Below are positions 2,093 to 64,000 of a stretch of 64,000 nt of DNA, one piece after another (within the stretch, counting starts at the first letter, position 1; the number at the start of each line of letters is the position of its first letter). The notes beneath the pieces were generated by a model. That model searched no databases and was not told the origin of the DNA. It saw only the letters and a program-made list of their open reading frames with translations. Both the position numbers and the translations under genes were made by a program. The DNA comes from Octopus sinensis (taxonomy: Eukaryota): NCBI RefSeq assembly GCF_006345805.1, contig NC_043014.1:52638001-52702000 (forward strand). The letters run 5' to 3'.

Positions 2093-2699
2093 ACATACCT
2101 TTCAATTTTGTTCATGTTACTCATCTCTTAAATATTGTTGATGCTATTACTGTTATTATTGTTGTTTCTGTTGTTTATGGTGGTGGTGGTGGTGGTGGTG
2201 TGGTCGTCGTCATTATCGTTGTTGTTCGTACTTTTGCACTTGTTGCTGATGTCATAGCAACGAAGCGGAAATTATATTTCTCTTTGGCGAGAAATTTATT
2301 TCTCCTTCAGCTGCTCTTCGTCGGAGTCAACAAAATGCTGCCCTTGGTCGATTATTTTTCCCAAATCTGACATTTTTTTATAAATTAGAAAAATGAATAG
2401 AATCTTGTCTTCACAAAATAAAATGAGGAACAAATTAGTTACTCAGTTTAAAACATCACTAAACAGTTATGCCCGGAAATATAGCTACCAACAAAATAGA
2501 GGTGATTTTCGATCTATCAGCCTTTTATATGACAAATATATCTATCCGGAGAATAAGAAATCGGTGTCATGTCAAAAAGTCAACCCTCAACAAGCAGACC
2601 CGTCTCCTATTGTCACCGTCAATGCTTTAATGAAAAGCTATAGCTCATGCTGGGTTTTTGTCCGGTACAAGAAGGACCGCGTTACCCAGGGAGGAACCA

Positions 2700-2860
2700 G
2701 ATTGGTGTCGGAAAATCTGCTGCTAGAACATAGCCCTAATCCTAGACCTGTAGTGACACCACAAAAAACTACACCTAAAGCAAAAAGCATAAAATGGACT
2801 AGAGAGGATTATAGAGACGTGTTGAAAGCTTCCTCTACTGCCCAACTAAACACAAACAAT
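2700..2860 (+). mobile_element. Possible N-terminal fragment of an R4/Dong-type retrotransposon ORF
   Basis: KWTREDYRDVLKASSTAQLN within ORF 2393-2908 resembles the KWTREE...YY N-terminal motif of R4-clade ORFs. Single short motif. Confidence 0.3.
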
Positions 2861-3654
2861 ATTCTACTTCTGCTACTTCCTCTCCCCAAGTTTTCGGTCC
2901 TAGTATAGAGCTCTTATATTTCGTTCGCCCTAGGACGCTGGGTGTGTCTCTGCAAGTGGCTAGTACAAAATGCAGATTAAAAGTAAATAATAACAAGAGG
3001 ACTCTGTCAAGTGCAACACCAACGTCCTATCAACGGTCAGCCAGAGATAATTTTTTAAATGAGAATATCAAAAATTAAGTAAAAAACAAACGAAAAAATA
3101 ATCCAGAATCCTTGTCCGGTAACTGATCGATCCCAATGGTAGTCATGGGATGTGAAGGTGGGCGTGCGGGCCGTGTTTGTAATCCACTGATATGGTGTCT
3201 TTACAACCATTAAGGTCTATAGTGAAAAAATTATCGTGCGTGAAAGAAAACGGAAAGGACCTAGGTTCAACAATATCGGTGGGCACAAAAAGTCCGAGCT
3301 AGAAATGCAATTGTCAAGTAGGTAAGAAGTTTTAAACAGGAGTAATATATTCAAAATTGGTAAAACTAAAAATTGTCGAGGAAAAATTGAAATTATTATT
3401 GTTACTGAATATGTTAGTGTTATTTAATTTCTGAACGGTTTCGCTGCCGTTTGTTTATGTAGTTTGATTTCTTTATTCATCAGTTTCTACTAAGATAGAA
3501 ATACGAGTAAAATCAATAATAGAGAAACGAAAAAAAACTTTGGAAACAGCAACGCGTCCATAGCTTACGTGGAAACCATGAGCGTGCTTTCAAGGGAGAT
3601 AATCAGAGAAAGACTCGGAAGTCTGTAAGATGGCAATACTTCATATAAAGTAAA

Positions 3655-3855
3655 GTGAATATAACAAATAAGCCAGAATCTTTGCCCGATACCGGATTGA
3701 TCTCAAAATCTAATCAGTTCGTGCCAGTCACAAGGCCAAACATCCCTGAAAGTTTCATTCGAACCCATCCAGCGGCTCTTGAGATATCTTGTCCACGGAC
3801 AAACAAACGAACAAGACTGAAAATAATACCTCCGCATTCGCTAAGGCAGAAGATA
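3655..3855 (+). mobile_element. Interspersed repeat end with a degenerate terminal hairpin (non-autonomous DNA or Helentron-like element?)
   Basis: ccagaatctttgcccgataccggattgatctcaaa partially repeats 3102-3136. The segment ends in acctccgc-attcgctaa-ggcagaagat, an imperfect inverted repeat. Confidence 0.3.
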
Positions 3856-4732
3856 AAGCACTGTACAAGCAATTGAAAACGAATGAAAATGAAAATAGGT
3901 GGGTAAAGAAAAGAATGCATGGACAATTCAATAGGGATGTTGAAGATAAGACAGACAGAAAAAAAGATGGCTGTGGATGACTAAAAGTGATGTAAAACCA
4001 GAAACAGATGCTCTAATCTGTGCTGCCCAAGAGCAAGCACTAAGAACAAACTACATAAAATGGAGGTTAGACAACACATCAGAAAGTGATAAGTGCAGAA
4101 TCTGTGGACAAAACGGTGGAACTGTATGGCATATTACCAGCCAAGGTACGCCACTAGCCCAGAAGGAATATAAGAGATGCCCCGACAATATAGCCAGGTT
4201 TGTCCATTGGACACTTTGCAACAAGTATGCACTTGACAGAGCAAAAAATTGGTAAGACCACAAACCTGAAGGCATCGTTGAAAATGGAAATGCAAAGACC
4301 CTATGGATTTTATGATTCAGTGCGACCATGAGATACAGAATAGGAAGCCAGACATAGTCTTAATTGAGAAAGAAAACAAACTATGCTGAATCATAGACAT
4401 AGCATGCCCAGCTGACAACAAGGTATGCGATAAGAAAGAAAGAAAAGTTGATAGATATGACAGGTTAGCTTGGGAAGTTAAGCAGTTGTCAATGAAAAAG
4501 TAGGTAGTATTACCAATAATTGTGGGAGTACTATAGTAAGTAAAAATGTTGAGAAGTACATGGAACAAATAGGGGCTGCAATAAAGGTGGAGCACTTTCA
4601 GAAAACAACACTGCTTGGAACAGCTCAAATACTCCGGATGGTGCTCGAAAAATAAGAGGTGCTATCTTAGTTCACTGGTAGTGAACAGCTGACACCGTAG
4701 TACAGCTCAAGCATTAGAAGCTGTGCAAAGGC
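3856..4732 (+). mobile_element. 5'-truncated RLE-type non-LTR retrotransposon (R4/Dong-like), copy 1, degenerate
   Basis: Across frameshifts it reads W..KRMHGQF, KPETDALICAAQEQALRTN, zinc knuckle CRICG..TVWHITS, endonuclease RKPDIVLIEK..IIDIACPAD and KTTLLGTA. A 3'UTR hairpin gttcact-ggt-agtgaac lies at 4670-4686, followed by (TAA)n. Confidence 0.88.
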
Positions 4733-5732: not shown

Positions 5733-5762
<30 letters not shown>

Positions 5763-5915
5763 TGTATGTATGTATGTATGTATGTATGTATGTATGTATG
5801 TATGTCTGTCTGTATGTATGTATGTATGTGTGTATGTATGTCTGTATGTATGTATGTATGTATGTATGTATGTATGTATGTATGTATGTATGTATGTATG
5901 TATGTATGTATGTAT
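5733..5915. repeat. (TATG)n microsatellite
   Basis: Direct reading. Confidence 0.95.
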
Positions 5916-6129: not shown

Positions 6130-6990
6130 TCAAATGATAAACTTCAGGAAAGTTTTACAGATTTTTACAGTTCCAGTGATGGATTGGATCAGTAGTCTTT
6201 GAATTAGCTTTCTCCTTTCTGGTTTTGAGAAGCCTAATTTCTCAAGATTGGTATTTAGGCCATGTATTACATATCCCAGGGCCCCAATAATTACAGGTAT
6301 AAACCTGAACTTGTAATCTGGATAGTGTAACTGCAGATTTCTCAATAGTTCAGTATAAGTATTCTCTTTTTCATTGATCTTCGGCTTTATAACATCCACT
6401 GAGCAGCTAATTTCCACAACTGTGCACATTCTCTCTTCTCTATTCCAAATCATTATATCAAGTCTTTTGTGCTTATACTTTATTGAGGTCTTCACTGGGA
6501 CATTTCACCAGTACTCTTTTTTATTATGACTGGCTGTGGCTTCTTGTCCTCATGGTTATCTTTCCAACATGTTTCATTATAGAGTGTCCTAGCTACAACA
6601 TCATGTCTCATCGGTAGATAATACTATGATGACATTTTCAGACAACTGCATATGATGTGTGTGATATCTTCAGTGTGAACTCCTCAAAGTCTGCATCGGT
6701 TGTCACATTTTACGGCTTTTCCTGTATCTCTGTTCCTTTTGTGCATCAGGTACTTGGTTGATATTTCCTGTTCCTGGATTGCAAACGCATACTCTTCAAA
6801 GTAGGTGGTAATAATCCGGCTATTGGCCCATGATAAACTGCTTTGATGATCGATGTTACTATCATCACGGAGCTTTCTACTGACATATTCGTGTATAGTC
6901 TTCTGCTCATCCTTTCCTCTGATGATGCATTGCAGTAGAGTTGTGCGTCTTCTTTGGGCATGTATTCTAGGTTATCAGACAAAGAATGTT
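6130..6990 (-). mobile_element. RLE-type non-LTR retrotransposon 3' fragment, second subfamily, copy 3
   Basis: Minus strand reads AIQEQEISTKYL, CRL*GVHTEDITHIICSC (CCHC knuckle) and YYLPMRHDVVA. ORF 6130-6495 has KRLDIMIW..VEISC..D..KENTY..FIPVIIGALG, a PD-(D/E)xK-like endonuclease. Confidence 0.82.
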
Positions 6991-7636: not shown

Positions 7637-7772
7637 TGTATGTATGTATGTATGTATGTATGTATGTATGTATGTATGTATGTATGTATGTATGCATGTA
7701 TGTATGTATGTATGTATGTTGTATGTATGTATGTTTGTATGTTTGTATGTATATATGTATGTTGTATGTATG
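7637..7772. repeat. (TATG)n microsatellite
   Basis: Direct reading. Confidence 0.93.
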
Positions 7773-9447: not shown

Positions 9448-9887
9448 ATCTAACGAAACAGGAGTTACCTCCCTTTGCCCATTAAATTTCAGTCTTTCCA
9501 ATAAGTTTCCTACAAAACATTCAAAGATGTTCGTTCATCTTCAACGTAAAATATGTCAGTTTGTTCTTCAATTAAACTGACTTAATTTCACTGTATTTGA
9601 AATTTTATTTCATAACCTGCATATTCTTTCCCTCTCTCTCTCTCTCTCACTCTCTCTCTCACACACACACAAACACAGCTAATTTGGAAGGATTTAGATT
9701 AAAATAGTATTTAATATTGCATTTTACAGCAGGTTAGACATAACTTGTATCTCCCACAACACAAAAAATATATATAGATAAAGAAGTTTAAAAATATCAG
9801 CCTGCTTCTTATAAGAGAAATTGCAGTTTCTCATAAAGAAATGTATTGCTCAACCAAAAACAATTTTGCTTTGTATTGAGTTGTATG

Positions 9888-10200
9888 AGGTGCAATGACC
9901 CAGTAGTTAGGGCAGCGGACTCACGGTCGGAGGATCATGGTTTCGATTCCTAGACCAGGCGTTGTGTGTGTTTATTGAGCGAAAACACCTAAAGCTCCAC
10001 GAGGCTCCGGCAGGGGGGGGGGCGACTCCAGTTGTACTCTTTCACCCCAACTTTCTCTCACTCTCTCTTCCTGTTTCTTGGGTAACGCTGCAATGGACTG
10101 GCATCTCGTCCAGCTGGGGGGAACACATACACCATAGAAACCAGGAAACTGGGCTCATGAGCCTGGCTAGGCTTGAAACAGGTGCATAAATAAAATGAAA
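9888..10200 (+). mobile_element. tRNA-derived SINE
   Basis: Pol III A-box-like tgacccagtagttag (~9896-9910), B-box ggtttcgattcc (9939-9950), central gcaatggactggcatctcgtccag motif and an A-rich tail. Confidence 0.75.
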
Positions 10201-12104: not shown

Positions 12105-12630
12105 AAATTAAAGACTGATACGGGAGCAGCAGGCAACACATTGCCAATGTGTGCATATCACCAGATGTACAAATCAACTCCAACTGCAGACATGCTTAAA
12201 CCAGAGAAAAACATTCGTCTGATGGCAGACAATGGCCAAAAAATCAAATGCTTGGGATCAATCTACTTTCAGCTTTGCTCAAATGGCAGTAAATTCCATG
12301 ATGCCAAATTCTATGTGGTAGACGTGGATGGACCCCCAATTATCGTATTGCCAACAGGTGAGGCAATAAAACTGGATTCAGCTCCTGATATCACAACAAT
12401 CAAAGGCCTGAAAGAAACATACTCAAATCTTTTTGACAGCCTGGGCAACTTCAAAGGACCCACACAACTGTACATAAAAGCAAGATCGGAACCCTTCATT
12501 GACCCACCTTGGAAATGCTCAGTTCACTTGGAAAAGAAGCTCAATATTGAACTCTGGAAGATGGAAGAAATGGGGGTCATCAAGCCAGTGGTGTTCAAGC
12601 ATGGAATATTCTGTAAAAAAAGATGGATCT
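12105..12630 (+). mobile_element. Ty3/Gypsy LTR-retrotransposon pol remnant (aspartic protease plus RT N-terminus)
   Basis: KLKTDTGAAGNTLP has the retropepsin D-T-G at 12117-12125, in frame with ORF 12141-12668. It is followed by LFDSLGNFKG, PFIDPP..KMEEMGVIKPV and a frameshifted W.SSM..SVKKDGS. No LTRs seen. Confidence 0.78.
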
Positions 12631-12759
12631 ATTTCCCATGTAATTCAGTGTCAAAAGAAGTGGCATAGGAGTACTAAAGTGTGGCAAGTAGACTTTGTTG
12701 CTGTAATCATAAATAACCTGGCCATAATAATAATATTCTGAACATCTGGTTTTCCTGTT

Positions 12760-13300
12760 TCTAGTCCAGCGGCACTGGCAACAACCTTGCTCAGATGTTT
12801 TTTACACGTGCCACCAGCACAAGTACCAGTAAGGTGATGCAGGTAACGACCACACTCGAATGATGCTTTTTACATGCCACTGGCACAGAAGCCAGTTTTT
12901 TGCTCTGGCAATGATCATGCTCGGATGGTACTCTTAGCGCTCCATTTGCACAGATGCCAGTCATTGAATTTGATTTCAATTTCACTTGCCTCAACAGGTC
13001 TTTGAAAGCAGAGTTTAGTGTCCAATGAAGGAAAGGTATGCATAAGTGGGCTGGTTACACCCCTGGCATAGGCCACAGGTTGTGGTCTCACTTGGCTTGC
13101 CGAGTCTTCTCAAGCACAGCATATTTCCAAAGGTCACGGTCACTAGTTATTGCCTCAGAGAGGATCATTGCCTTAGTGAGGGTCATTGCCTTAGTGAGGG
13201 TCATTGCCTCGGTGAGCTCATTGCCTCGGTGAGGGTCATTGCCTCGGTGAGGGTCATTGCCTCGGTGAGGGTCATTGTCTCGGTGAGGGTCATTGCCTCG
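12760..13300 (-). mobile_element. 3' end of an RTE-type LINE or a derived SINE (ORF C-terminus plus 3'UTR)
   Basis: Minus strand reads EAITSDRDLWKYAVLEKTRQAK* (stop at 13088-13090). Downstream UTR-like degenerate tandem motifs lie at 12760-12950. Confidence 0.6.
13148..13300. repeat. 18-bp minisatellite (cattgcctcggtgagggt) x ~8.5
   Basis: 7 units of 18 bp, one of 17 bp and a 10-bp partial unit. Confidence 0.95.
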
Positions 13301-14883: not shown

Positions 14884-17800
14884 GAGATCTCACCTGCAAC
14901 CATTGCCATACACAAGACAAAAATGAGATCTCACCTGCAACCATTGCCATACACAAGACAAAAATGAGATCTCACCTGCAACCATTGCCATACACAAGAC
15001 AAAAATGAGATCTCACCTGCAACCATTGCCATACACAAGACAAAAATGAGATCTCACCTGCAACCATTGCCATACACAAGACAAAAATGAGATCTCACCT
15101 GCAACCATTGACATACACAAGACAAAAATGAGATCTCACCTGCAACCATTGCCATACACAAGACAAAAATGAGATCTCACCTGCAACCATTGCCATACAC
15201 AAGACAAAAATGAGATCTCACCTGCAACCATTGCCATACACAAGACAAAATGAGATCTCACCTGCAACCATTGCCATATGCACAAGACAAAAATGAGATC
15301 TCACCTGCAACCATTGCCATACACAAGACAAAATGAGATCTCACCTGCAACCATTGCCATACACAAGACAAAAATGAGATCTCACCTGCAACCATTGCCA
15401 TACGCAAGACAAAAATGAGATCTCACCTGCAACCATTGCCATACGCAAGACAAAAATGAGATCTCACCTGCAACCATTGCCATACACAAGACAAAAATGA
15501 GATCTCACCTGCAACCATTGCCATACACAAGACAAAAATGAGATCTCACCTGCAACCATTGCCATACACAAGACAAAAATGAGATCTCACCTGCAACCAT
15601 TGCCATAGACAAGACAAAAATGAGATCTCACCTGCAACCATTGCCATACGCAAGACAAAAATGAGATCTCACCTGCAACCATTGCCATACACAAGACAAA
15701 AATGAGATCTCACCTGCAACCATTGCCATACGCAAGACAAAAATGAGATCTCACCTGCAACCATTGCCATACACAAGACAAAAATGAGATCTCACCTGCA
15801 ACCATTGCCATACGCAAAACAAATATGAGATCTCACCTGCAACCATTGCCATACACAAGACAAAAATGAGATCTCACCTGCAACCATTGCCATACACAAG
15901 ACAAAAATGAGATCTCACCTGCAACCATTGCCATACGCAAGACAAAAATGAGATCTCACCTGCAACCATTGCCATACGCAAGACAAAAATGAGATCTCAC
16001 CTGCAACCATTGCCATACACAAGACAAAAATGAGATCTCACCTGCAACCATTGACATACACAAGACAAAAATGAGATCTCACCTGCAACCATTGACATAC
16101 ACAAGACAAAAATGAGATCTCACCTGCAACCATTGCCATACACAAGACAAAAATGAGATCTCACCTGCAACCATTGCCATACACAAGACAAAACTGAGAT
16201 CTCACCTGCAATCATTGCCATACACAAGACAAAACTGAGATCTCACCTGCAACCATTGCCATACACAAGACAAAAATGAGATCTCACCTGCAACCATTGA
16301 CATACACAAGACAAAAATGAGATCTCACCTGCAACCATTGCCATACACAAGACAAAAATGAGATCTCACCTGCAACCATTGCCATACACAAGACAAAACT
16401 GAGATCTCACCTGCAACCATTGCCATACACAAGACAAAAATGAGATCTCACCTGCAACCATTGACATAGACAAGACAAAAATGAGATCTCACCTGCAACC
16501 ATTGCCATACACAAGACAAAAATGAGAACTCACCTGCAACCATTGCCATACACAAGACAAAAATGAGATCTCACCTGCAACCATTGCCATACACAAGACA
16601 AAAATGAGATCTCACCTGCAACCATTGCCATACACAAGACAAAAATGAGATCTCACCTGCAACCATTGCCATACACAAGACAAAAATGAGATCTCACCTG
16701 CAACCATTGCCATATACAAGACACAAATGAGATCTCACCTGCAACCATTGCCATACACAAGACAAAAATGAGATCTCACCTGCAACCATTGCCATACGCA
16801 AGACAAAAATGAGATCTCACCTGCAACCATTGCCATACGCAAGACAAAAATGAGATCTCACCTGCAACCATTGCCATACACAAGACAAAAATGAGATCTC
16901 ACCTGCAACCATTGCCATACGCAAGACAAAAATGAGATCTCACCTGCAACCATTGCCATACACAAGACAAAAATGAGATCTCACCTGCAACCATTGCCAT
17001 ACACAAGACAAAAATGAGATCTCACCTGCAACCATTGCCATACACAAGACAAAAATGAGATCTCACCTGCAACCATTGACATACACAAGACAAAAATGAG
17101 ATCTCACCTGCAACCATTGCCATATACAAGACAAAAATGAGATCTCACCTGCAACCATTGCCATACACAAGACAAAAATGAGATCTCACCTGCAACCATT
17201 GCCATACACAAGACAAAAATGAGATCTCACCTGCAACCATTGCCATACACAAGACAAAAATGAGATCTCACCTGCAACCATTGCCATACACAAGACAAAA
17301 ATGAGATCTCACCTGCAACCATTGCCATACACAAGACAAAAATGAGATCTCACCTGCAACCATTGCCATACACAAGACAAAAATGAGATCTCACCTGCAA
17401 CCATTGACATACACAAGACAAAAATGAGATCTCACCTGCAACCATTGCCATACACAAGACAAAAATGAGATCTCACCTGCAACCATTGACATACACAAGA
17501 CAAAAATGAGATCTCACCTGCAACCATTGCCATACACAAGACAAAAATGAGATCTCACCTGCAACCATTGCCATACACAAGACAAAAATGAGATCTCACC
17601 TGCAACCATTGCCATACACAAGACAAAAGTGAGATCTCACCTGCAACCATTGCCATACACAAGACAAAAATGAGATCTCACCTGCAACCATTGCCATACG
17701 CAAGACAAAAATGAGATCTCACCTGCAACCATTGCCATACACAAGACAAAAATGAGATCTCACCTGCAACCATTGCCATACACAAGACAAAAATGAGATC

Positions 17801-55726: not shown

Positions 55727-57049
55727 ATTTAAGGAAAAGACAACAACATTTTCCTTCTCATACTTCTCACGCTGACACTACCAAGACTTCGAAGCCAGGA
55801 CTTTTGTCTTGCCGTGATACCACATGCATTGTCTCTAGAGGCAACTGAACCTCACGTGTATGGGAGAGAAGGCTAACTATGCACTGCTGTGAAGATGGTT
55901 ACTGAAAGCAAACCCTTTGTACGAAGCATCTGTGAATAAACGGTGTATTGAATTTACTCCGCCTGAGAACTTCATTCTTTGTATCTCCAGTTCTTTGAAT
56001 CAACAGAATAATTATGATAGAAGATACCCCAAAAGTATCCTAAAACCCTTCCTTCCATTATATGGTAATTTACTTGAATTTACCTATGTATAACATCATA
56101 AATTATGACTCTGATAGAATCTTTTATTATTTTTGTTCCTGTCCTCCAATTTTCATGTCTCCTTCAATATCTCCTTTTTCTTTTTTTTACCAAACTACTA
56201 TCAGATTTGTTTTTATCATCGCAGATTATAATTACGCAAATTTAATTTCTCCCAAATTCAGTTATTTGACAGATTTTCATTAAAAAGCAATGAAATTCTG
56301 CGTGAAATACATTATTACATCAATATACCAAATTTGAACATTTTCACTTAATTTAAAAATTTCAAAAAGTGAAGGGAAACAGAAAAGGTCCAAGCCGGGT
56401 TTTTCTTTTTTTCAAATAAATTCACGAGCGAAATACGTGGGCAGAACTAATGTACATTCAAATAAAAACAGCATTTGTGTCACCTACTTTTACTTTTTCT
56501 TATTTTAAATATTTGTCATGTTTAACAAAAGGCACCAATCTTCCATTGTTACGTTGTATCACAAACACATTACTTACGTAAAATAGTTTAAACACTTTCT
56601 ACGTATTTCCTCTTCAATAACTATGAACCACTTTCTTTATATTATGTACTAAGTTATATTACAGAAGATCTCTAACCACCAAGCTCCTTGCTTCATGTTA
56701 TTGCATTCAATTATTTCCATGAAGACATTTAATCACTAACGATGCTGGCGATGTAAAAAATATATGAAAACTGAAATATATTAATATTTGGTCCCTCTTG
56801 TCTTCACATGCAGCCAGCCAAACTACTGGGAAATTCCAACGAAGTGTTAATTATCAAAGCCCGCACACTTAACCTCCATTCATGCACATATAACTAATTG
56901 AAGTACGTGTAGTGTACATTTGTAACGAGTTTTGACATGGTCAGTTACTGTAGCAGTTCAATACTGTTTAGAACGAACAAATAATACTTTTTAAATGTAC
57001 CAGTTTCACTTTCTCAAACTAACAAGTGTGGACGGGTCAATAGATTCTG

Positions 57050-57360
57050 TGCTCCCACTGCAGTAGGCATCCGTTGATTTCAAGGGACCACGGATGTGTG
57101 CCTGAGAATTTGTGTTAGCTGTTGATAGTGGTGCCACATCTGCTGTGGTGGCTGTACAGGCTTACATGCGAGTGGCAGTCACACAGACAATGGCTGCATT
57201 CGAAGAAGCCCTCTGCCATCACTATTGATCCGTTGTGGTAAGTTCCAGGTTCTCTTCCCCTCACTTCATTCTCTTTTTGCAGTTTTTGGCTCCAGTATGG
57301 GCAGTCATTTGCAACCTCCTCCCATTTCTGGATGTCCACATCTATTAACTTCATCTCTCT
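57050..57360 (-). mobile_element. 3' end of an RTE (BovB-like) LINE
   Basis: ORF 57115-57354: DIQKWEEVANDCPYW...FECSHCLCDCHSHVSLYSHHSRC matches the RTE C-terminal W..LA.DR..W and CxxC..SRIGL.SH.R.C motifs. The 3'UTR is gcacacatccgtggtcccttgaaatcaacggatgcc. Confidence 0.75.
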
Positions 57361-57979
57361 CTCTCTTGCTGATGTCCTTGTCCAAAGAAAAGCTAGTTTT
57401 GTGTGTGTGTGTGCGCTTTGCGTTATCTATTAACTAATATCAGTGTAGTCCTTCGTTATTTGAAGTTGAGAATAAACCCCCAATTTATTGATAATTCAAA
57501 TGTTTTATTACTAAAGATGGAATGGATACAGTTAGTTTACCAAATCAAAACCATTTTTTGCACATTTTTAAATTCCTGATTTCAAGGCAGATGACTCATA
57601 TGGCTCAGCATCGTTTCTAACTCATTTGTTCTGTGGCACATCCTTAATGCCACAGCACAAATGATGGATGGAGTTACTGCAACAGTAAATAAATGAAGTG
57701 AAACACTGAAATATTTTGTAGAATCTGCTAGATTGTATTTTCCAATCTGTGGCTTTTGAGACATTCTAGGGTCTGCGGATAACAGACAAGGTCTTTGACT
57801 TTGTTAGTGTCCTACTTCAAACATCAGATGGTGTTTGGGAAGTCACCTGGTTGTTTCTAGCATGTGTTATATTTGAGTGGGGTGTCTGTATACCCCTGGT
57901 TATTCACTGATTTCTTTTCTCTTTCTCATTTTTCTTACTATTTGCTTTTGTCAGTTATGTTCTTTTCCACTGGAGGAAA

Positions 57980-58100
57980 GTCGTCATCATTTAACACCTG
58001 TTTTCCATACTGGCATGGGTTAAACGGTTAGACAGGAACTGCTAACACCAACCACTTTGTAGAGTGTAGTGGGTGCTTTTGTTATTGCACCGGTAACCGC
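57980..58100. mobile_element. SINE-like repeat fragment
   Basis: catcatttaacacctgttttccatactggcatgggtt resembles a common Octopus-type repeat end, from memory. Confidence 0.4.
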
Positions 58101-59234
58101 GAGGCCACTATCTAACTTGCAAAATTGGTTAAGTGTACCCCTAATTCATGTTGTAGACATACAGGCAATCCTCAACATTGTTTCATTATAACATTCATGT
58201 GAAGTAATATAGAATAGTGTGAAATATAAATCCACCTAGGGTACCTAAAGTACATACCACAAAAATGAACTGTTGTTTACTATAATTTTTCCTTTCTTTT
58301 GGAACTTGTTTTCAATTCAGTAAAATAGAAAGAAATATATAAACGAGATTGAACAACAATACAAATCATTTTCTTTTTTTGTTTAGTTTTGTTTATCAAT
58401 ATTTAGCAAACAACATCAACATAGTCATCATATACACAGGTTGGCTGCCTTGAAACCAGCAGGCAGTGGTACCTACATGGTATCAGATTAAGGGCTTTAT
58501 CAAAGGACACAGTATTTCAGTTTGAATACACTTAACACACCACATCTTCACTTCAAAATATTCCCTGTAAATCAATACAAATTGGTTAATGGAGAAAGAA
58601 TAAACATTAATTGAAATATCTTGTGAAATTTTAATGGCTTTTGCACAGAAATTACGTCACTGCTACTTGCAAAGAACTGGAATTTACAATTAAACACATT
58701 CACGTGTCTTGAGGTGATGGGTTGTCGAGATTGTCATTTTCTGGAGGTAAAGGACCATGAGAATCCTTATTTTCTTCATTTTGAAAGGTAATCACAATAT
58801 CAAGAACTGGTGCAGATGATGATGATGCTGACGACAACAATGATGGCGGCAGCAGTGGTGGTCACACATCTCGGTGAATAGATATTGATTTTTCTAATGC
58901 TTCATAGTCTATTAGTGATTCTTCAGTCTTAATCGTCCGTGTTCTTCATGGCACACACTTCCAAAACATTGCTGCCTCGTCTACACAATAGTCATAGAAG
59001 TTCAATTCCATCTGATGCCAATGAGTCAAACGTTGTCCAGGGAATGCTTTTCTCCACACACTACATGAAACTTTAAACTATGTCAATCTTTGAAACTGGG
59101 AAGCCAAACCTTACCATAACCACAATATAAAATATATTTAAACATATATTAGAACTATATAAAGTGTGTGCATTTTCCTTCTTTTATTTTATATACACAC
59201 ACACACATATATATACATACATATATATATATAA

Positions 59235-59268
<34 letters not shown>

Positions 59269-59509
59269 ATATATACTTTATTAAAAAGCAGCAAAAATAT
59301 CACAAAAACTGTTACTCAGAGTTTCACGTTACCATTCATCACACAGTTTTGTTTACATTCTAAACAAAACAATCCAGCAAACAGGAACATGAAACCCGAG
59401 TAACAGTTTTTGGGATATTTTTGCTGCTTTTTAATAAAGCATATTCCTCAACCTCTGGTACTCGAGTACTATTTTTTCCACCTTCTTTCACATTTATGTG
59501 CTTACTCTG

Positions 59510-59650
<141 letters not shown>

Positions 59651-59985
59651 TGCACATATAGGTACAGGACATCACAAAACATAAACAACATGAAATACAA
59701 AGGCAAGCCTGGTATGCGAACAATGAAACAAACAAATGGAAGACAAGACAACTAACATACAGAACGACCCTTCATCAGTTGTTGGGTGTTTATCTCCACT
59801 CCATATTTCGAGCAATTCAGAACACTATGTGTCTTCGTTGTTTCATTTCGTTTGTTGTATGTCCAGTTTTTGTTACCAACTTTCACCTTCAGCAAAAACC
59901 AAATTTTATTTCGGTTTCCAGGAGCAACTCTTTCTCGAAGAAACATATTGTCATGAATTGCTTGAAATATATGTATTATTATATA

Positions 59986-60038
<53 letters not shown>

Positions 60039-60129
60039 GGGCATTCTTTAAATTATTTCTACACTCAGCTTTTTATTCGGTTGCTACATTTAGAATTCTG
60101 CAATCATGCACTGTATAGACATTTATGCT

Positions 60130-61430
60130 GCATTTCAGGATTTTTAGTATAAACGATTGCATATCTACAATTTTCTTCATTTCAAGGAATATACTTTCAA
60201 CCTCTGCCAGCACTTTATCTGGAGAATGGATTTTCGAGTATTTCCTTTGAAATAGTCTCAGTTTTGTTGTGAATTTGACAGTATTATGAGGACATCATCG
60301 TTGGGGAATATAATCTAGGCAATTGCAAACAAATGTCTTCCAACGGTTAAGCCTGATCTCTTCTGTTCTTTGGAATATTCATTGGCTCTACGCCCTTAAT
60401 TTTTTACAAATTTATCACATTTGTAATTTACACCTGGATGTCTTTTTTAATCCATTTACAACTCCCAAGGCCAACACTATTTTTTCACTCTGGTACAGCA
60501 ATTTCTTTTGGCATTTAAGTTCTTTTGGTGTCTTTAATAACTTTGAGGTTTTTACTACTTTCACAATCGTAGCACCCTTGCTGTAACTCATGAGGACAAC
60601 TGGGGATAAGTCTGATATAGAAGTTTCAAACGATGTCCCCAGAACAAAAACTAGTCCCCTCTATGGAAACCTGCAGAATGGTTAACCGTTCATTGCATGC
60701 AGGTATGTAAATATTGGAAAGGTACTGAGGTAAGGGTGCATCGGTAGTAGAAACAAGATTTCTGTCAGTGAGGAAATTAAAAAAAACCATTCACCATGTT
60801 TCTGACAATATGGTGGTCACAAATTTCATGGAATATTGTTGTGTGGCCATCTTTGTCAAGTCCAAATACATCCCTTCTACTTTTGATTGGTAAAGTAGCT
60901 GTTTTCACATCCAATTCTAATGTGGCAGTATTTGTTCTTGGACAGAATCTATATTGGGTTTCACACAAGTTATTTTACTCTTGGAACAGAATCAATTTGT
61001 GTTTGATGCTGAATTCTGTGATTTAACTGGTAGATGAAGTCAAAGATGCATGTCTATAATGTTTTGTGTTTGTCCTGCATCCTCATTTATGGCAAGAATA
61101 TACAACAGCTTTTTTATTGCTAATGGGAATTTTAATGTTCTCCAGAAGATTTTGGAAAGAAACTAAAGGACTTTGGTTAGAGGATTTTTACATATTTTTA
61201 GGAGAATTGTTGGGAAGCAATCAGGGTCCGGTGCTGAGTTTATATGTATTTTGTCTGAAACAGTTATTCCATCGATTTCTTCTACGTCCACGTAAGGCCA
61301 TGCTATTGAAAGTCTTTGTTGGCTTAGTTGTGTACCAGGAAAATGGTGAAGATATTAGAAGAGTCAGATATGCCATTCAGTTCTTTATTCTTTTGAAATT
61401 TAGCTGTATTAACATTATCAAGACATGTCA
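60130..61430 (-). mobile_element. Heavily decayed CR1/L2-group LINE reverse-transcriptase region
   Basis: Colinear degenerate motifs on the minus strand: NSAPDPDCFPTILLKIC (cf. SAxGPDG.P..LLK), HK*GCRTNTKHYRHASLTS (cf. K.G......NYRPISLTS), QYRFCPRT (cf. QHGFR.GRS), WFFNFLTDR, and YSL..RYAIVY (cf. YSLERRR.RY.I). Confidence 0.75.
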
Positions 61431-61552
61431 CTGATGTTCAACTTCATCAGAGACACAGAAACCACCACAATAACAGCAGTAACTATCAGGTGGGACACTG
61501 CCAAAATACAGCAGACACAGGAAAATGTTCTTCACAATTATGAAAAAACAAA

Positions 61553-63727
61553 CTAAGATAGACTGCAAAGAAAATTAAAAATATTCACAATGTCATCTCT
61601 GTGTCCACTTTGGCATTTCAACTGAGGAAAACTTTCTAAATGTTTTGGAATTTCTATATCTTCATGGTTACTGATCATAAAAATTTGACCAATGTTAGGT
61701 TGTCGATCTTCCATGATTTGTTTGGCATATTCAGTGTGGGTTAAAAACTCTGGTGATATAGTCTTTGAATGTTCTAAATAAATTCCAATATTGCAACTGT
61801 TTTCTAATATGGTACGAAGGTTTACAGTTTTATATTTTCCCAATATATAGTCACGATTACCAAATGTAACTTTTAACCCAAAGTATTTGTCTAGATTCAT
61901 TCCAATGTTTTCAGCCAGTTCTTCAGAGTTTGGGGATGTTAAAATATAGATATCATAATGAAAGTTAGTTACGATGTCATTCTTTGAACATGCTAACCCC
62001 GTTTTAGCATTGGTTTCAGAGCCAAATCCAAAACAAAGCTCATAACATTTTCTGAAGAACTCTTTGCTACAGTCAGGTTCTGTTTCTGTGAAATGCTTTC
62101 CTAAATTTACATAAATTTGTTTCATTAGCTTTACATCAACTTCATGGGGCTTAACTTCTGAAAACCTAAGACAAAGAAAAGCTTTAAAATATTGCTTATT
62201 TTTACAAAGTTTTCGTAACTTTCGTGATAATTCACTTTTATCACAATCCACGAGAAGTTTATTATAAAGTTCTTCATCATCACGGAGTTCCTCTACTGAC
62301 TCAATTAATTCCAACAGTTTTTCATTATACTCAATATACCCATGCTTATACACATCAGTCATAATATCCTTTATTCCCCAAATGTCTTTCAGCTTCTTCT
62401 GGAAAGGAAGAAATTCTATAGCAGATTTAATAGCAAGGAAGAACCTATCTGTTCCATCGTCTCTAAATTCTCGTTTCAACTCTTCATCATTTTCTTCTTC
62501 TGCTAGTATGAAATATAATCTTCCATACAAAATGTTAAAACTAATGTCTTGTATTTTAATATTTGTTTTAAATTGTTCACAACACTCCTGGGCATTTTCG
62601 TATTCTTTCAAAGCCAAATATAACAAAATCAAATCGTAGAGAACAGCTCCATTTTCTGGAGAAAGTTTAAGAGCTTCTTTAAAGTGATATTCTATTTTGC
62701 CAATGAATTCATTCCTTTCCAATTCAGGAATAGTTCTAGGATATTTAATAAGTTTTCCAAGTGTATTTTCTTCCACAGAAAACTCCTTCTTTGCAGTGAA
62801 ACATGTGAATTCTGGAATATGTATTTTTTGATAAGTTAATCCAAGATGATGATGAGAAAATGCTGTTGCATTTATTTCGATTGCTTTTACAAACAATTCT
62901 TTTGCTTTATCAAACTTATATAAAGTCTTATAAAAGTTAGCACACTTTTCCAAAACAAAACGGTCATCAGGGGCAAAATGAAGAGCTCTTTGAACATATT
63001 TTTCACTGAATTCCTGATTCTTATGACTATTACATTTCCTTGAAGGTCTCACTTTAAACAAAGCTAATAATGCTAACGTTTTCCCCATTAGGATCTTGTC
63101 AATACAGCGAGGAAAAGCACATCGTATTTTCTCTAAGTACTGTACTGCCTCTGTACTAATTGTGTTTTTTTTATCTTCATCAGAGATCTTTCTTAAACAA
63201 CGATACTGTAACAAAGCTACACCAAATAGACATGAATAATTGCCCGGACAAAAATTGGAAGCCTCTTTGTAAAGTTTGATAGCCCTCTCATAATCATTGA
63301 ATGATATTCGACTTAAACAATAAGCAACATTCATTTTACCTTCTGCTTCTATCTGTTGGAAATCTTCTCTTTTTTCAAGATTGTTAAGATAAACCATAAC
63401 CTCTTTTAACTTATTCATATTTTCATTGTACAGATGAATGAATGCAAGATTGGTTAATGCCAAGAGGTTGTCTGGATTAGTTTCTTGAACTTCATTGGCT
63501 AATCTTTCAGCTTCAATATTCTTATTTAGCTCCCACTGAATAAACACCAAGGTATTCTTGTGGCGAATCTCATCTTCTAAACCAGACACAGTATCGTTAC
63601 TTAATGAATTTTCCAGTTTTTTGTAAAGAGACAACCAATGATCTTTGGTGTAGTGAAAATATTCTCCCATTAAATTCGGAAATCTCTGAATTTTTTCTCT
63701 GTACAATTCTCTTCTGCTTTCGTCATC
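61553..63727 (-). CDS. Terminal coding exon (724 aa) of an IFIT/TTC22-like TPR protein with a C-terminal TIR-like domain; upstream exon(s) lie beyond the window
   Basis: 2,175-nt open frame with stop TAG at 61553-61555. A phase-0 acceptor ...ttttgtttttctttcag|GAT precedes it. TPR motifs are colinear with IFIT5/TTC22 (NPDNLLALTNLAFI; AYCLSR..YERAIKLYKEA..P.N..FGVA..YR; EKYVQRAL..VLEKCANFYK..KAKELF.KAIE..AFSHHHLGLTY). TIR boxes lie at the C-terminus. Confidence 0.9.
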   Translation of the reverse strand, partial: DDESRRELYREKIQRFPNLMGEYFHYTKDHWLSLYKKLENSLSNDTVSGLEDEIRHKNTLVFIQWELNKNIEAERLANEVQETNPDNLLALTNLAFIHLYNENMNKLKEVMVYLNNLEKREDFQQIEAEGKMNVAYCLSRISFNDYERAIKLYKEASNFCPGNYSCLFGVALLQYRCLRKISDEDKKNTISTEAVQYLEKIRCAFPRCIDKILMGKTLALLALFKVRPSRKCNSHKNQEFSEKYVQRALHFAPDDRFVLEKCANFYKTLYKFDKAKELFVKAIEINATAFSHHHLGLTYQKIHIPEFTCFTAKKEFSVEENTLGKLIKYPRTIPELERNEFIGKIEYHFKEALKLSPENGAVLYDLILLYLALKEYENAQECCEQFKTNIKIQDISFNILYGRLYFILAEEENDEELKREFRDDGTDRFFLAIKSAIEFLPFQKKLKDIWGIKDIMTDVYKHGYIEYNEKLLELIESVEELRDDEELYNKLLVDCDKSELSRKLRKLCKNKQYFKAFLCLRFSEVKPHEVDVKLMKQIYVNLGKHFTETEPDCSKEFFRKCYELCFGFGSETNAKTGLACSKNDIVTNFHYDIYILTSPNSEELAENIGMNLDKYFGLKVTFGNRDYILGKYKTVNLRTILENSCNIGIYLEHSKTISPEFLTHTEYAKQIMEDRQPNIGQIFMISNHEDIEIPKHLESFPQLKCQSGHRDDIVNIFNFLCSLS
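61565..61963 (-). other. TIR-like domain (~133 aa) at the C-terminus of the CDS
   Basis: Box1-like FHYDIYILTS, box2/BB-loop-like GLKVTFGNRDYILG, alphaB/betaC-like VNLRTILENSCNIGIYL. Spacing and length fit a TIR fold. Confidence 0.75.
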
Positions 63728-63775
63728 CTGAAAGAAAAACAAAATAGTGAATATGTATAAAATGTGTATTAAAAA
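63728..63775 (-). promoter_or_regulatory. 3' splice acceptor with polypyrimidine tract
   Basis: Minus strand: ttttttttaatacacattttatacatattcactattttgtttttctttcag|GATGACGAA. Protein similarity begins only after the AG. Confidence 0.8.
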
Positions 63776-64000
63776 AAGCATCACCATTATCGTTGGCAAG
63801 ATTCCAGGTTACTGAGACAAGGCTAAACCCTCCAAGTTAGATAAGGCTGATGCAGTGGAAGTTCATTTGGGGTTCCAGAGTTTGATGCCTTTCAAAAAAA
63901 AATACTGTCACCAGAAATGGAATTCCAGATGATAGCAGTTTTGTGGAAGAAGGATTGGTTTAGTACTCACTAACGTCTGTGTGTGTGCATGCATGATTGC

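Follow-up and report, generated by a model that had tools for sequence, protein, structure and literature searches.

A tandemly repeated Octopus gene encoding an IFIT-like TPR protein with a probable, highly divergent TIR-like tail

IFITs are regarded as vertebrate, interferon-driven effectors without a signalling domain, and the pairing of a repeat-built sensor with a TIR output domain is known from bacteria and plants. Whether these two themes could meet in a single animal protein is the question raised by a gene near the right-hand end of the 64,000-nucleotide stretch of Octopus sinensis DNA analysed here (contig NC_043014.1, positions 52,638,001 to 52,702,000; hereafter the window). The gene, LOC115221489, lies on the minus strand and is annotated as encoding an "uncharacterized protein". 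We propose that it is a tandem, Octopus-specific gene for a cytosolic, receptor-like protein composed of an IFIT-type TPR clamp, a linker and a TIR-like tail, a reading to which we assign a probability of about one half. The gene models themselves are already public, with precomputed Pfam annotation that comprises TPR families only, and the TIR reading alone is new.

The initial annotation of the window had placed an open reading frame at 61553-63727. A frame is indeed present there, on the minus strand, and it extends over 61553..63799 (748 codons), the first 24 codons being a polypyrimidine tract translated as protein. The splice acceptor reads ttttgtttttctttcag followed by GATGACGAA, with the exon beginning GAT and the 3' splice site at 63728/63727, so that 61553-63727 corresponds precisely to a single exon, with 724 codons ahead of a TAG stop. 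The translation of this exon is 100% identical to XP_029647544.1 at all 724 residues, and window positions 55801-64000 match CM016876.1 (assembly GCA_006345805.1) at 100% identity over 8200 bases. Exon 1, MAEEIEEIIEKLDGILL, encodes 17 residues ahead of a GTAAGT donor and lies ~9.9 kb past the window end, at 10001-10051 of locus sequence L008, which is the O. sinensis sequence of the window's own locus; its two tandem paralogues are contained in L003 and L007. IFIT genes consist of two exons, with nearly the whole open reading frame in exon 2 (PMC13197388). LOC115221489, with 17 residues in exon 1 and 724 in exon 2, conforms to this arrangement.

We next consider the N-terminal part of the protein, for which an IFIT-like identity had been proposed from alignments made by eye. 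In Pfam, the full-length protein matches TPR families exclusively. A phmmer search against all PDB sequences placed IFIT5 first (E 6e-7), followed by IFIT1 (2e-5) and IFIT2, and it reproduced both of the proposed IFIT5 alignments, with AYCLSRISFNDYERAIKLYKEASNFCPGN..FGVALLQYR aligned to IFIT5 144-186 and VLEKCANFYK..KAKELFVKAIE..AFSHHHLGLTY to IFIT5 251-293. A profile of 11 octopus family members matched IFIT5 with E 6.7e-11 and IFIT1 with E 1.1e-10, the latter over profile columns 84-421 against residues 76-394 (~340 colinear), whereas generic TPR proteins (designed consensus TPRs, CDC27, OGT and others) were matched over one ~65-residue stretch at profile columns ~245-313. AlphaFold, run with an 11-sequence alignment, modelled most of residues 1-500 with a predicted local distance difference test score (pLDDT) of 75-93. 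When this model was compared with the PDB using Foldseek, ranks 1-13 were all IFIT1 or IFIT5 (E 2e-10 to 1e-8), with target-normalised TM-scores of 0.57-0.62 over 430-480 target residues; generic TPR proteins started at E 9e-8 and IFIT2 stood at rank 27. On the strength of the PDB sequence ranking, the colinear family profile and the Foldseek comparison of the predicted model, the IFIT likeness therefore holds at the level of sequence and predicted fold, and the N-terminal module can be said, with good support, to resemble clearly the IFIT RNA-binding proteins. As the TM-score is moderate, the arrangement of the TPR subdomains is uncertain. The protein also departs from an IFIT made of TPR repeats only in that it carries a conserved 225-residue C-terminal extension.

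An overall identity to IFITs of 17-19%, TM-scores of ~0.6 and the fact that consensus-designed TPR proteins also score well, over a short stretch, would be compatible with a non-immune TPR scaffold whose IFIT resemblance stems from generic TPR repeats and whose promoter motifs arose by chance. We consider this very unlikely, given that alignment over the whole length is seen with IFITs only and that the NCBI pipeline itself names paralogues of the gene IFIT5-like and IFIT1B-like.

The residues through which IFIT5 contacts the RNA 5' end have been tabulated (PMC9677429, table 5), and were mapped onto the octopus protein through the phmmer IFIT5 alignment. Twelve positions could be compared in this way; E33, T37, Q41, K415 and K426 of IFIT5 fall outside the alignable part and were left out of the count. 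Y156, R186, H287 and L291 of IFIT5 are kept (octopus Y146, R176, H293 and L297, respectively), and K150, Y250 and R260 are replaced conservatively (R140, F257 and K267). The charge of R253 is reversed (E260), while Y254, Q288, F337 and F339 are changed to K261, H294, Asn and Ala, respectively. That just ~7 of the 12 contacts are kept or conservatively replaced, with Glu at the position of R253, is a point against an IFIT-type sensor. Judged from the alignment, binding of RNA 5' ends by the octopus protein appears plausible and a binding mode identical to that of IFIT5 unlikely.

Beyond the TPR region lies a linker for which the initial annotation gave a length of ~140 residues. This proved to be an overestimate: with the IFIT-like part taken to end at residue 500, the linker comprises ~80-90 residues (~501-580). 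The region around residue 500 reads DKSEL, and it is here that the short paralogues (474-510 residues, named IFIT5-like or IFIT1B-like by NCBI) end with ...HKSEL in the alignment. AlphaFold predicts four helices in the linker at pLDDT ~50-60, and the linker shares 41% identity with that of the O. vulgaris paralogue P0010 and has no family match in Pfam. A death domain, as would be expected of a MyD88-like adaptor, was rejected as an identity for the linker on the basis of a comparison with a death-domain profile (0.1%). A STAND/NLR architecture was likewise rejected because no NACHT/NB-ARC P-loop NTPase was detected in the Pfam scan of the full-length protein.

The identity of the C-terminal tail was analysed by profile-profile comparison. 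A TIR profile was assembled from 11 domain sequences (MyD88, TLR1, TLR2, TLR4, SARM1, TIRAP, IL1R1, Drosophila Toll, RPS4, L6 and PdTIR), all 11 of which were confirmed as PF01582, and it was compared by hhalign with an alignment that combined the window tail with two relatives and a 38%-identical paralogue. This revealed a similarity with a score of 39.4, a probability of 83.9% and a P value of 7.8e-6, over 111-132 colinear columns spanning residues 588-704; addition of a relic lineage gave a score of 40.5 and a probability of 85.8%, with P ranging from 5e-6 to 8e-6 over the two comparisons. The controls scored far lower, with a mean of 12.4 and a maximum of 22.3 for 200 column shuffles, a mean of 15.7 and a maximum of 24.1 for 200 block shuffles, 12.5 for the reversed alignment, and 14.2, 15.0 and 13.9 for profiles of the CheY receiver, flavodoxin and ribosomal L4, respectively. 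The TIR box 1, BB-loop and beta-C motifs that had been picked out by eye are put in register by this alignment, which in addition places LKVTF on beta-B, ENS-CNIGIYL on the E-x-S motif plus beta-C, and SPEFL on the S-x-x-F/Y-L that follows beta-C. The box 1 segment YDIYILTS is invariant in both paralogue lineages, and the distant O. vulgaris paralogue of locus L001 keeps the G, D, L and G of the BB-loop segment GNRDYILGK unchanged. When used alone, each of the two lineages, 38% identical to one another, prefers TIR in the same register (window 26.4, paralogue 30.2). A profile restricted to the TLR/IL-1R/MyD88 subset gives a probability of 77% versus 1.8% for the SARM1/plant/bacterial subset. 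Moreover, a hidden Markov model (HMM) built from the 11 TIR domains assigned 6.9-9.6 bits to four real tails versus at most 4.6 bits to all 204 reversed or shuffled decoys. The low-confidence secondary structure from AlphaFold (strand 592-596, helix 599-616, helix 637-642, strand 647-652, helix 659-674, short strand 682-683 and helix 710-722) reads strand-helix-(strand missing)-helix-strand-helix-strand-helix, the order of a TIR domain.

A series of results weighs against this assignment. No curated TIR model in Pfam (PF01582, PF13676, PF08937 and relatives) scores the tail of the window protein, its O. bimaculoides orthologue or an O. vulgaris paralogue at E<=10; the one match of these tails to any Pfam family is the sub-threshold Ribosomal_L4 match of the paralogue described below. 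PADLOC and NCBIfam list no TIR family for the tail, the sole NCBIfam row being a far-sub-threshold L4 match of the O. vulgaris paralogue, and PDB sequence and profile searches with the tail returned no TIR and nothing below E ~1. An exhaustive phmmer search of 1.84 billion cluster representatives found no relative of the tail outside Octopus; it picked up the orthologue from O. bimaculoides and, through the linker alone, one protein of O. vulgaris. Searching the protein collection with a profile of the C-terminal alignment also gave nothing at E<=10, but missed even orthologues that the collection contains; we attribute this to a limitation of the word index and do not count it as evidence of absence. 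The hhalign probability itself lies under the 90-95% usually demanded (the customary level being 95%), in a test that was aimed at one family and not run against a full library. The position of the BB-loop Pro is occupied by Leu629. Where NADase TIRs have their catalytic Glu, the window protein aligns Gln670 and the O. vulgaris paralogue a Glu, with low alignment confidence at this site. Both features speak in particular against a TIR that acts as an enzyme. Residues 564-724 were modelled at pLDDT <50 in the full-length run with 11 sequences (~25-45), and the 235-residue C-terminus alone at pLDDT 41, and AlphaFold therefore gives no test of a TIR fold; the E>0.7 matches to helical proteins only that Foldseek returned for the tail are meaningless given the quality of the model.

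Such results could be explained if the tail were an alpha/beta domain peculiar to this lineage and of some family other than TIR, or one too diverged to act as a TIR, and thus an orphan C-terminal domain. The lack of a match to any curated model or PDB sequence, the lack of a relative outside Octopus and the failure of AlphaFold to fold the tail all fit this explanation, as does a sub-threshold match of the paralogue tail (L001:4062-4502) to Pfam Ribosomal_L4 (E 8.8e-5, 22.7 bits versus a cutoff of 25.8). This match covers 55 residues over the last strand-helix elements of the paralogue and is not found in the window protein, and the identification of the paralogue tail as Ribosomal_L4 was itself rejected by hhalign (0.3%). 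We regard an orphan domain as rather unlikely, as the hhalign signal is TIR-specific and follows the order box 1, beta-B, BB-loop, alpha-B and beta-C, the TIR score exceeds those of all 400 shuffles and of three unrelated alpha/beta families including L4, and the two lineages independently yield one register. Of the C-terminal TIR domain originally proposed, then, the profile-profile similarity and an HMM score above decoys stand, while support from curated models, PDB sequences or a confident fold does not. Our best reading of these alignments is that the tail is a scaffold-class TIR that has diverged very far, and we consider its homology to TIR domains probable.

The two halves of the protein evolve differently. 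Among five long-form copies from O. sinensis and O. vulgaris, 48/489 sites (9.8%) vary in the TPR part versus 2/91 in the linker and 2/144 (1.4%) in the tail (Fisher p 2e-5). In the comparison with O. bimaculoides, the ratio of non-synonymous to synonymous substitution rates (dN/dS), 0.75 overall, declines from 0.79 in the TPR part to 0.71 in the linker and 0.52 in the tail, with dN values of 0.089 for the TPR part and 0.032 for the tail. The window copy and its tandem paralogue differ by 32.5 non-synonymous and 6.5 synonymous changes in the TPR part; the associated dN/dS of 1.2-1.35 is a comparison of paralogues, since L003 is a tandem paralogue in the same genome. A diversifying recognition module joined to a constant output module, as these rates suggest, fits a receptor. 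Set against this, gene conversion acting on the 3' half, and not constraint, could account for how little the tail varies.

Copies of the gene are found in three Octopus species. In O. sinensis, LOC115221489, LOC115221491 and LOC115221278 are near-identical long-form tandem copies located within ~75 kb, while O. vulgaris has three further long-form copies, deposited as "IFIT1B-like", and O. bimaculoides has a long-form orthologue, LOC106878804, of 85% identity. When the protein collection was searched with the whole-family profile, all matches were to Octopus paralogues or to TPR proteins of prokaryotes. A distant pair of paralogues lies in O. vulgaris at L001 (OX597833.1, ~8.79 Mb; 2332-4502 and 15431-17590), with 39% identity overall to the window protein and a C-terminal domain that is open and 38% identical to the window tail. 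The TIR-like domains of these two copies are identical to each other, one copy being frameshifted just before the domain, and both copies need a frame change, located either inside the TPR part or between it and the tail. In the annotation, one of them has been absorbed into the model of an adjacent BEACH/WD40 gene, and the other (P0010) is truncated just before the TIR-like domain.

Decayed copies of the linker and tail, interrupted by stops and frameshifts, were also found directly 3' of short genes, at L002 of O. sinensis and at L005 of O. vulgaris. The stops are common to the two species (YILG*CK, GIL*V and NY*F), and the remnants terminate in a GA-rich microsatellite. The presence of decayed tails 3' of short genes, with stops shared between species, indicates that the long architecture is ancestral to these short genes and that the short form arose by loss. 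In the O. sinensis gene model P0009, part of a tail relic has been spliced into the C-terminus. Given several visibly broken paralogues and an overall dN/dS of 0.75 versus O. bimaculoides, the long reading frame of the window could be suspected of being an annotation artefact or a decaying pseudogene. This is almost certainly not so: at least 7 copies from three species retain an unbroken 724-codon frame, and its tail is conserved, whereas the broken copies elsewhere show what decay looks like.

The persistence of tailless short paralogues as intact genes implies that the TPR module works alone, and this bears on a further alternative, namely that the protein is an IFIT-type effector and not a receptor. 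Such a protein would sequester or block non-self RNA, with the tail merely providing oligomerisation or localisation and no downstream signalling, in a role like that of the C-terminal IFIT1-IFIT3 contacts in mammals. The IFIT-like fold, the partly kept pocket (R140, Y146, R176, H293 and L297) and the Gln at the NADase Glu column are in keeping with an effector of this kind. We nevertheless think an effector unlikely, in that no part of the protein is as well conserved as the tail, whose closest profile is that of TLR/MyD88-type signalling TIRs, with the proviso that the data do not separate a signalling scaffold from plain oligomerisation.

Upstream of exon 1, and outside the window, ACTTTCACTTTCACACTTTCAC is present ~370 bp before the ATG in each of the three O. 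sinensis copies; its complement, GTGAAAGTGTGAAAGTGAAAGT, is a repeat of the interferon-stimulated response element (ISRE)/interferon regulatory factor (IRF) type. All three also carry GGGTTTCGTTTCTGGGAA, which contains the core TTCNNNGAA resembling a gamma-activated sequence (GAS), ~225 bp before the ATG. The strict ISRE pattern used, GAAANNGAAAST, is expected 0.34 times per 32 kb. In the O. bimaculoides promoter the strict pattern was not found; the first ISRE-like site is present with one mismatch, and a GGAAACGAAACT lies closer to the ATG. These motifs are suggestive, and no more, of control of the gene by IRFs. Molluscs possess IRF, STING and RLR parts, and to our knowledge have no recognisable interferon. 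That the strict ISRE match is not kept in O. bimaculoides would suit the non-immune TPR scaffold considered above; in contrast, tandem expansion, tails lost repeatedly and a dN/dS of 0.8-1.2 in the TPR part are typical of immune gene families.

Taken together, our analysis favours a receptor-like protein of two modules, the first an IFIT-type TPR clamp of ~500 residues and the second, after an 80-residue helical linker, a 140-residue domain that is most likely a very divergent TIR akin to the scaffold-type TIRs of TLRs and MyD88. The fast-diverging clamp would bind a non-self ligand, for which the analogy with IFIT1 and IFIT5 suggests an RNA 5' end as the likeliest candidate. The conserved TIR-like tail would then relay the signal through homotypic TIR contacts or oligomerisation. 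We infer the ligand, the signalling and the immune role; the coupling of a sensor to a TIR is consistent with the variable TPR part, the invariant tail, the tandem copies and the ISRE-like motifs.

Compared with vertebrate IFITs, the octopus protein has an all-helical TPR part of ~480-500 residues that is colinear with IFIT1 and IFIT5, and it keeps several RNA-contact positions; the gene shares the two-exon structure and the tandem cluster and carries ISRE-like promoter motifs. It differs in the 225 residues added by the linker and TIR-like tail, vertebrate IFITs being without a second domain, in an identity of just 17-19%, and in the pocket residues that replace R253, Y254, Q288, F337 and F339 of IFIT5 (E, K, H, N and A, respectively). 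With the TIRs of TLRs, IL-1R and MyD88, the tail has in common the order of its elements, box 1 (YDxYI), the BB-loop (RDxxxG) and the E-x-S before beta-C; unlike them, it falls below every curated threshold, has Leu for the BB-loop Pro, a doubtful box 3 and an unconfident predicted fold, and sits at the C-terminus of a TPR protein and not on a receptor or death-domain adaptor. Immunome surveys of oyster, Aplysia and other invertebrates list TIR-TPR proteins (PMC4346834, PMC9334734), which represent a similar molluscan cytosolic combination of TIR and TPR; as compared by description, these differ in having been found by a recognisable Pfam TIR and in not being called IFIT-like in the literature searched. 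That literature describes no IFIT-like protein with a TIR domain and no cephalopod IFIT-like genes. Bacterial defence proteins that combine TIR and TPR, such as those of the BcTir/Tpr operon (bioRxiv 10.1101/2023.05.26.542521), and STAND/Avs sensors likewise tie a repeat-array sensor to a TIR output. However, bacterial TIRs are NADases with a catalytic Glu, whereas the octopus tail appears scaffold-like with Gln at the corresponding column, and STAND proteins have a central NTPase, none of which was detected in the octopus protein.

Table 1. Coordinates of features of the IFIT-like gene and its paralogues; positions are those of the window unless a locus sequence is named
Feature	Position	Strand	Basis
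Terminal coding exon of LOC115221489, encoding residues 18-741 of the 741-aa protein	61553..63727	-	Open reading frame and protein identity
3' splice site (polypyrimidine tract and AG acceptor)	63728..63746	-	Sequence
Stop codon TAG	61553..61555	-	Sequence
Candidate polyadenylation signal, AATAAA hexamer 164 nt past the stop (such hexamers are frequent by chance in DNA so AT-rich)	61384..61389	-	Sequence only
IFIT-like TPR region, exon residues 1-500, all helical	62228..63727	-	Pfam TPR, PDB sequence matches, AlphaFold, Foldseek
Helical linker, residues 501-580, missing from the short 474-510-aa paralogues	61988..62227	-	Alignment and AlphaFold
Probable divergent TIR-like domain, residues 581-724	61556..61987	-	hhalign, and HMM score versus decoys
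YDIYILTS, aligned to TIR box 1/beta-A (F/Y-D-x-F-I-S-Y), residues 591-598	61934..61957	-	hhalign
GNRDYILGK, aligned to TIR box 2/BB-loop (RDxxPG), residues 623-631	61835..61861	-	hhalign
CNIGIYL, aligned to TIR beta-C after the conserved E-x-S, residues 645-651	61775..61795	-	hhalign
IVNIFNFL, C-terminal helix, possible counterpart of TIR box 3 (FW...L)	61568..61591	-	Weak; greedier local alignment only
ISRE/IRF-like promoter repeats	L008, L003 and L007, each at ~9630-9652 and 9773-9790
Linker/TIR-like remnants 3' of short IFIT5-like/IFIT1B-like genes	L002 2175-2716 and 17584-18125; L005 11575-12044

Elsewhere in the window, a satellite of 40.8 kb occupies positions 14884-55726, 5.8 kb downstream of the gene, with ~996 copies of the 41-bp unit GAGATCTCACCTGCAACCATTGCCATACACAAGACAAAAAT at 98% matching, and is strand-asymmetric (GC skew ~-0.41, AT skew ~+0.42). 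An exact 24-mer of this satellite occurs only in L008 and is absent from the fetched flanks of L003 and L007. Long runs of (AT)n/(TA)n, (TATG)n/(TGTA)n microsatellites and an 18-bp repeat are found at 981-1193, 1676-2090, 5733-5915, 7637-7772 and 13149-13300, the 18-bp unit, ATTGCCTCGGTGAGGGTC, being present in 8.5 tandem copies and containing the 8-mer ATTGCCTC, which is common to nothing else examined. The upstream 14 kb hold isolated open reading frames of 92-175 codons at 2393-2908, 3977-4255, 6130-6495 (minus strand) and 12141-12668. These gave no significant match in Pfam, and we take them to resemble fragments of transposable-element proteins.

One further scenario, which we offer as quite improbable on present evidence, is that IFIT-type sensors of RNA 5' ends exist outside vertebrates, in cephalopods as a single-chain receptor with an output by TIR assembly or NAD+-derived products. 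As the short octopus genes descend from the long form, the 'naked' IFIT could in this scenario be derived and the ancestral role one of signalling and not of sequestration. More immediately, this cephalopod family, with its IFIT fold, tandem copies, diverse TPR surface and conserved TIR-like tail, would be a testable candidate for a link between nucleic-acid recognition and signalling. It would extend the recurrent pairing of repeat sensor and TIR output to an animal IFIT-like scaffold and, if the tail is confirmed as a TIR, would mean that domain-based immunome surveys undercount molluscan TIR proteins.

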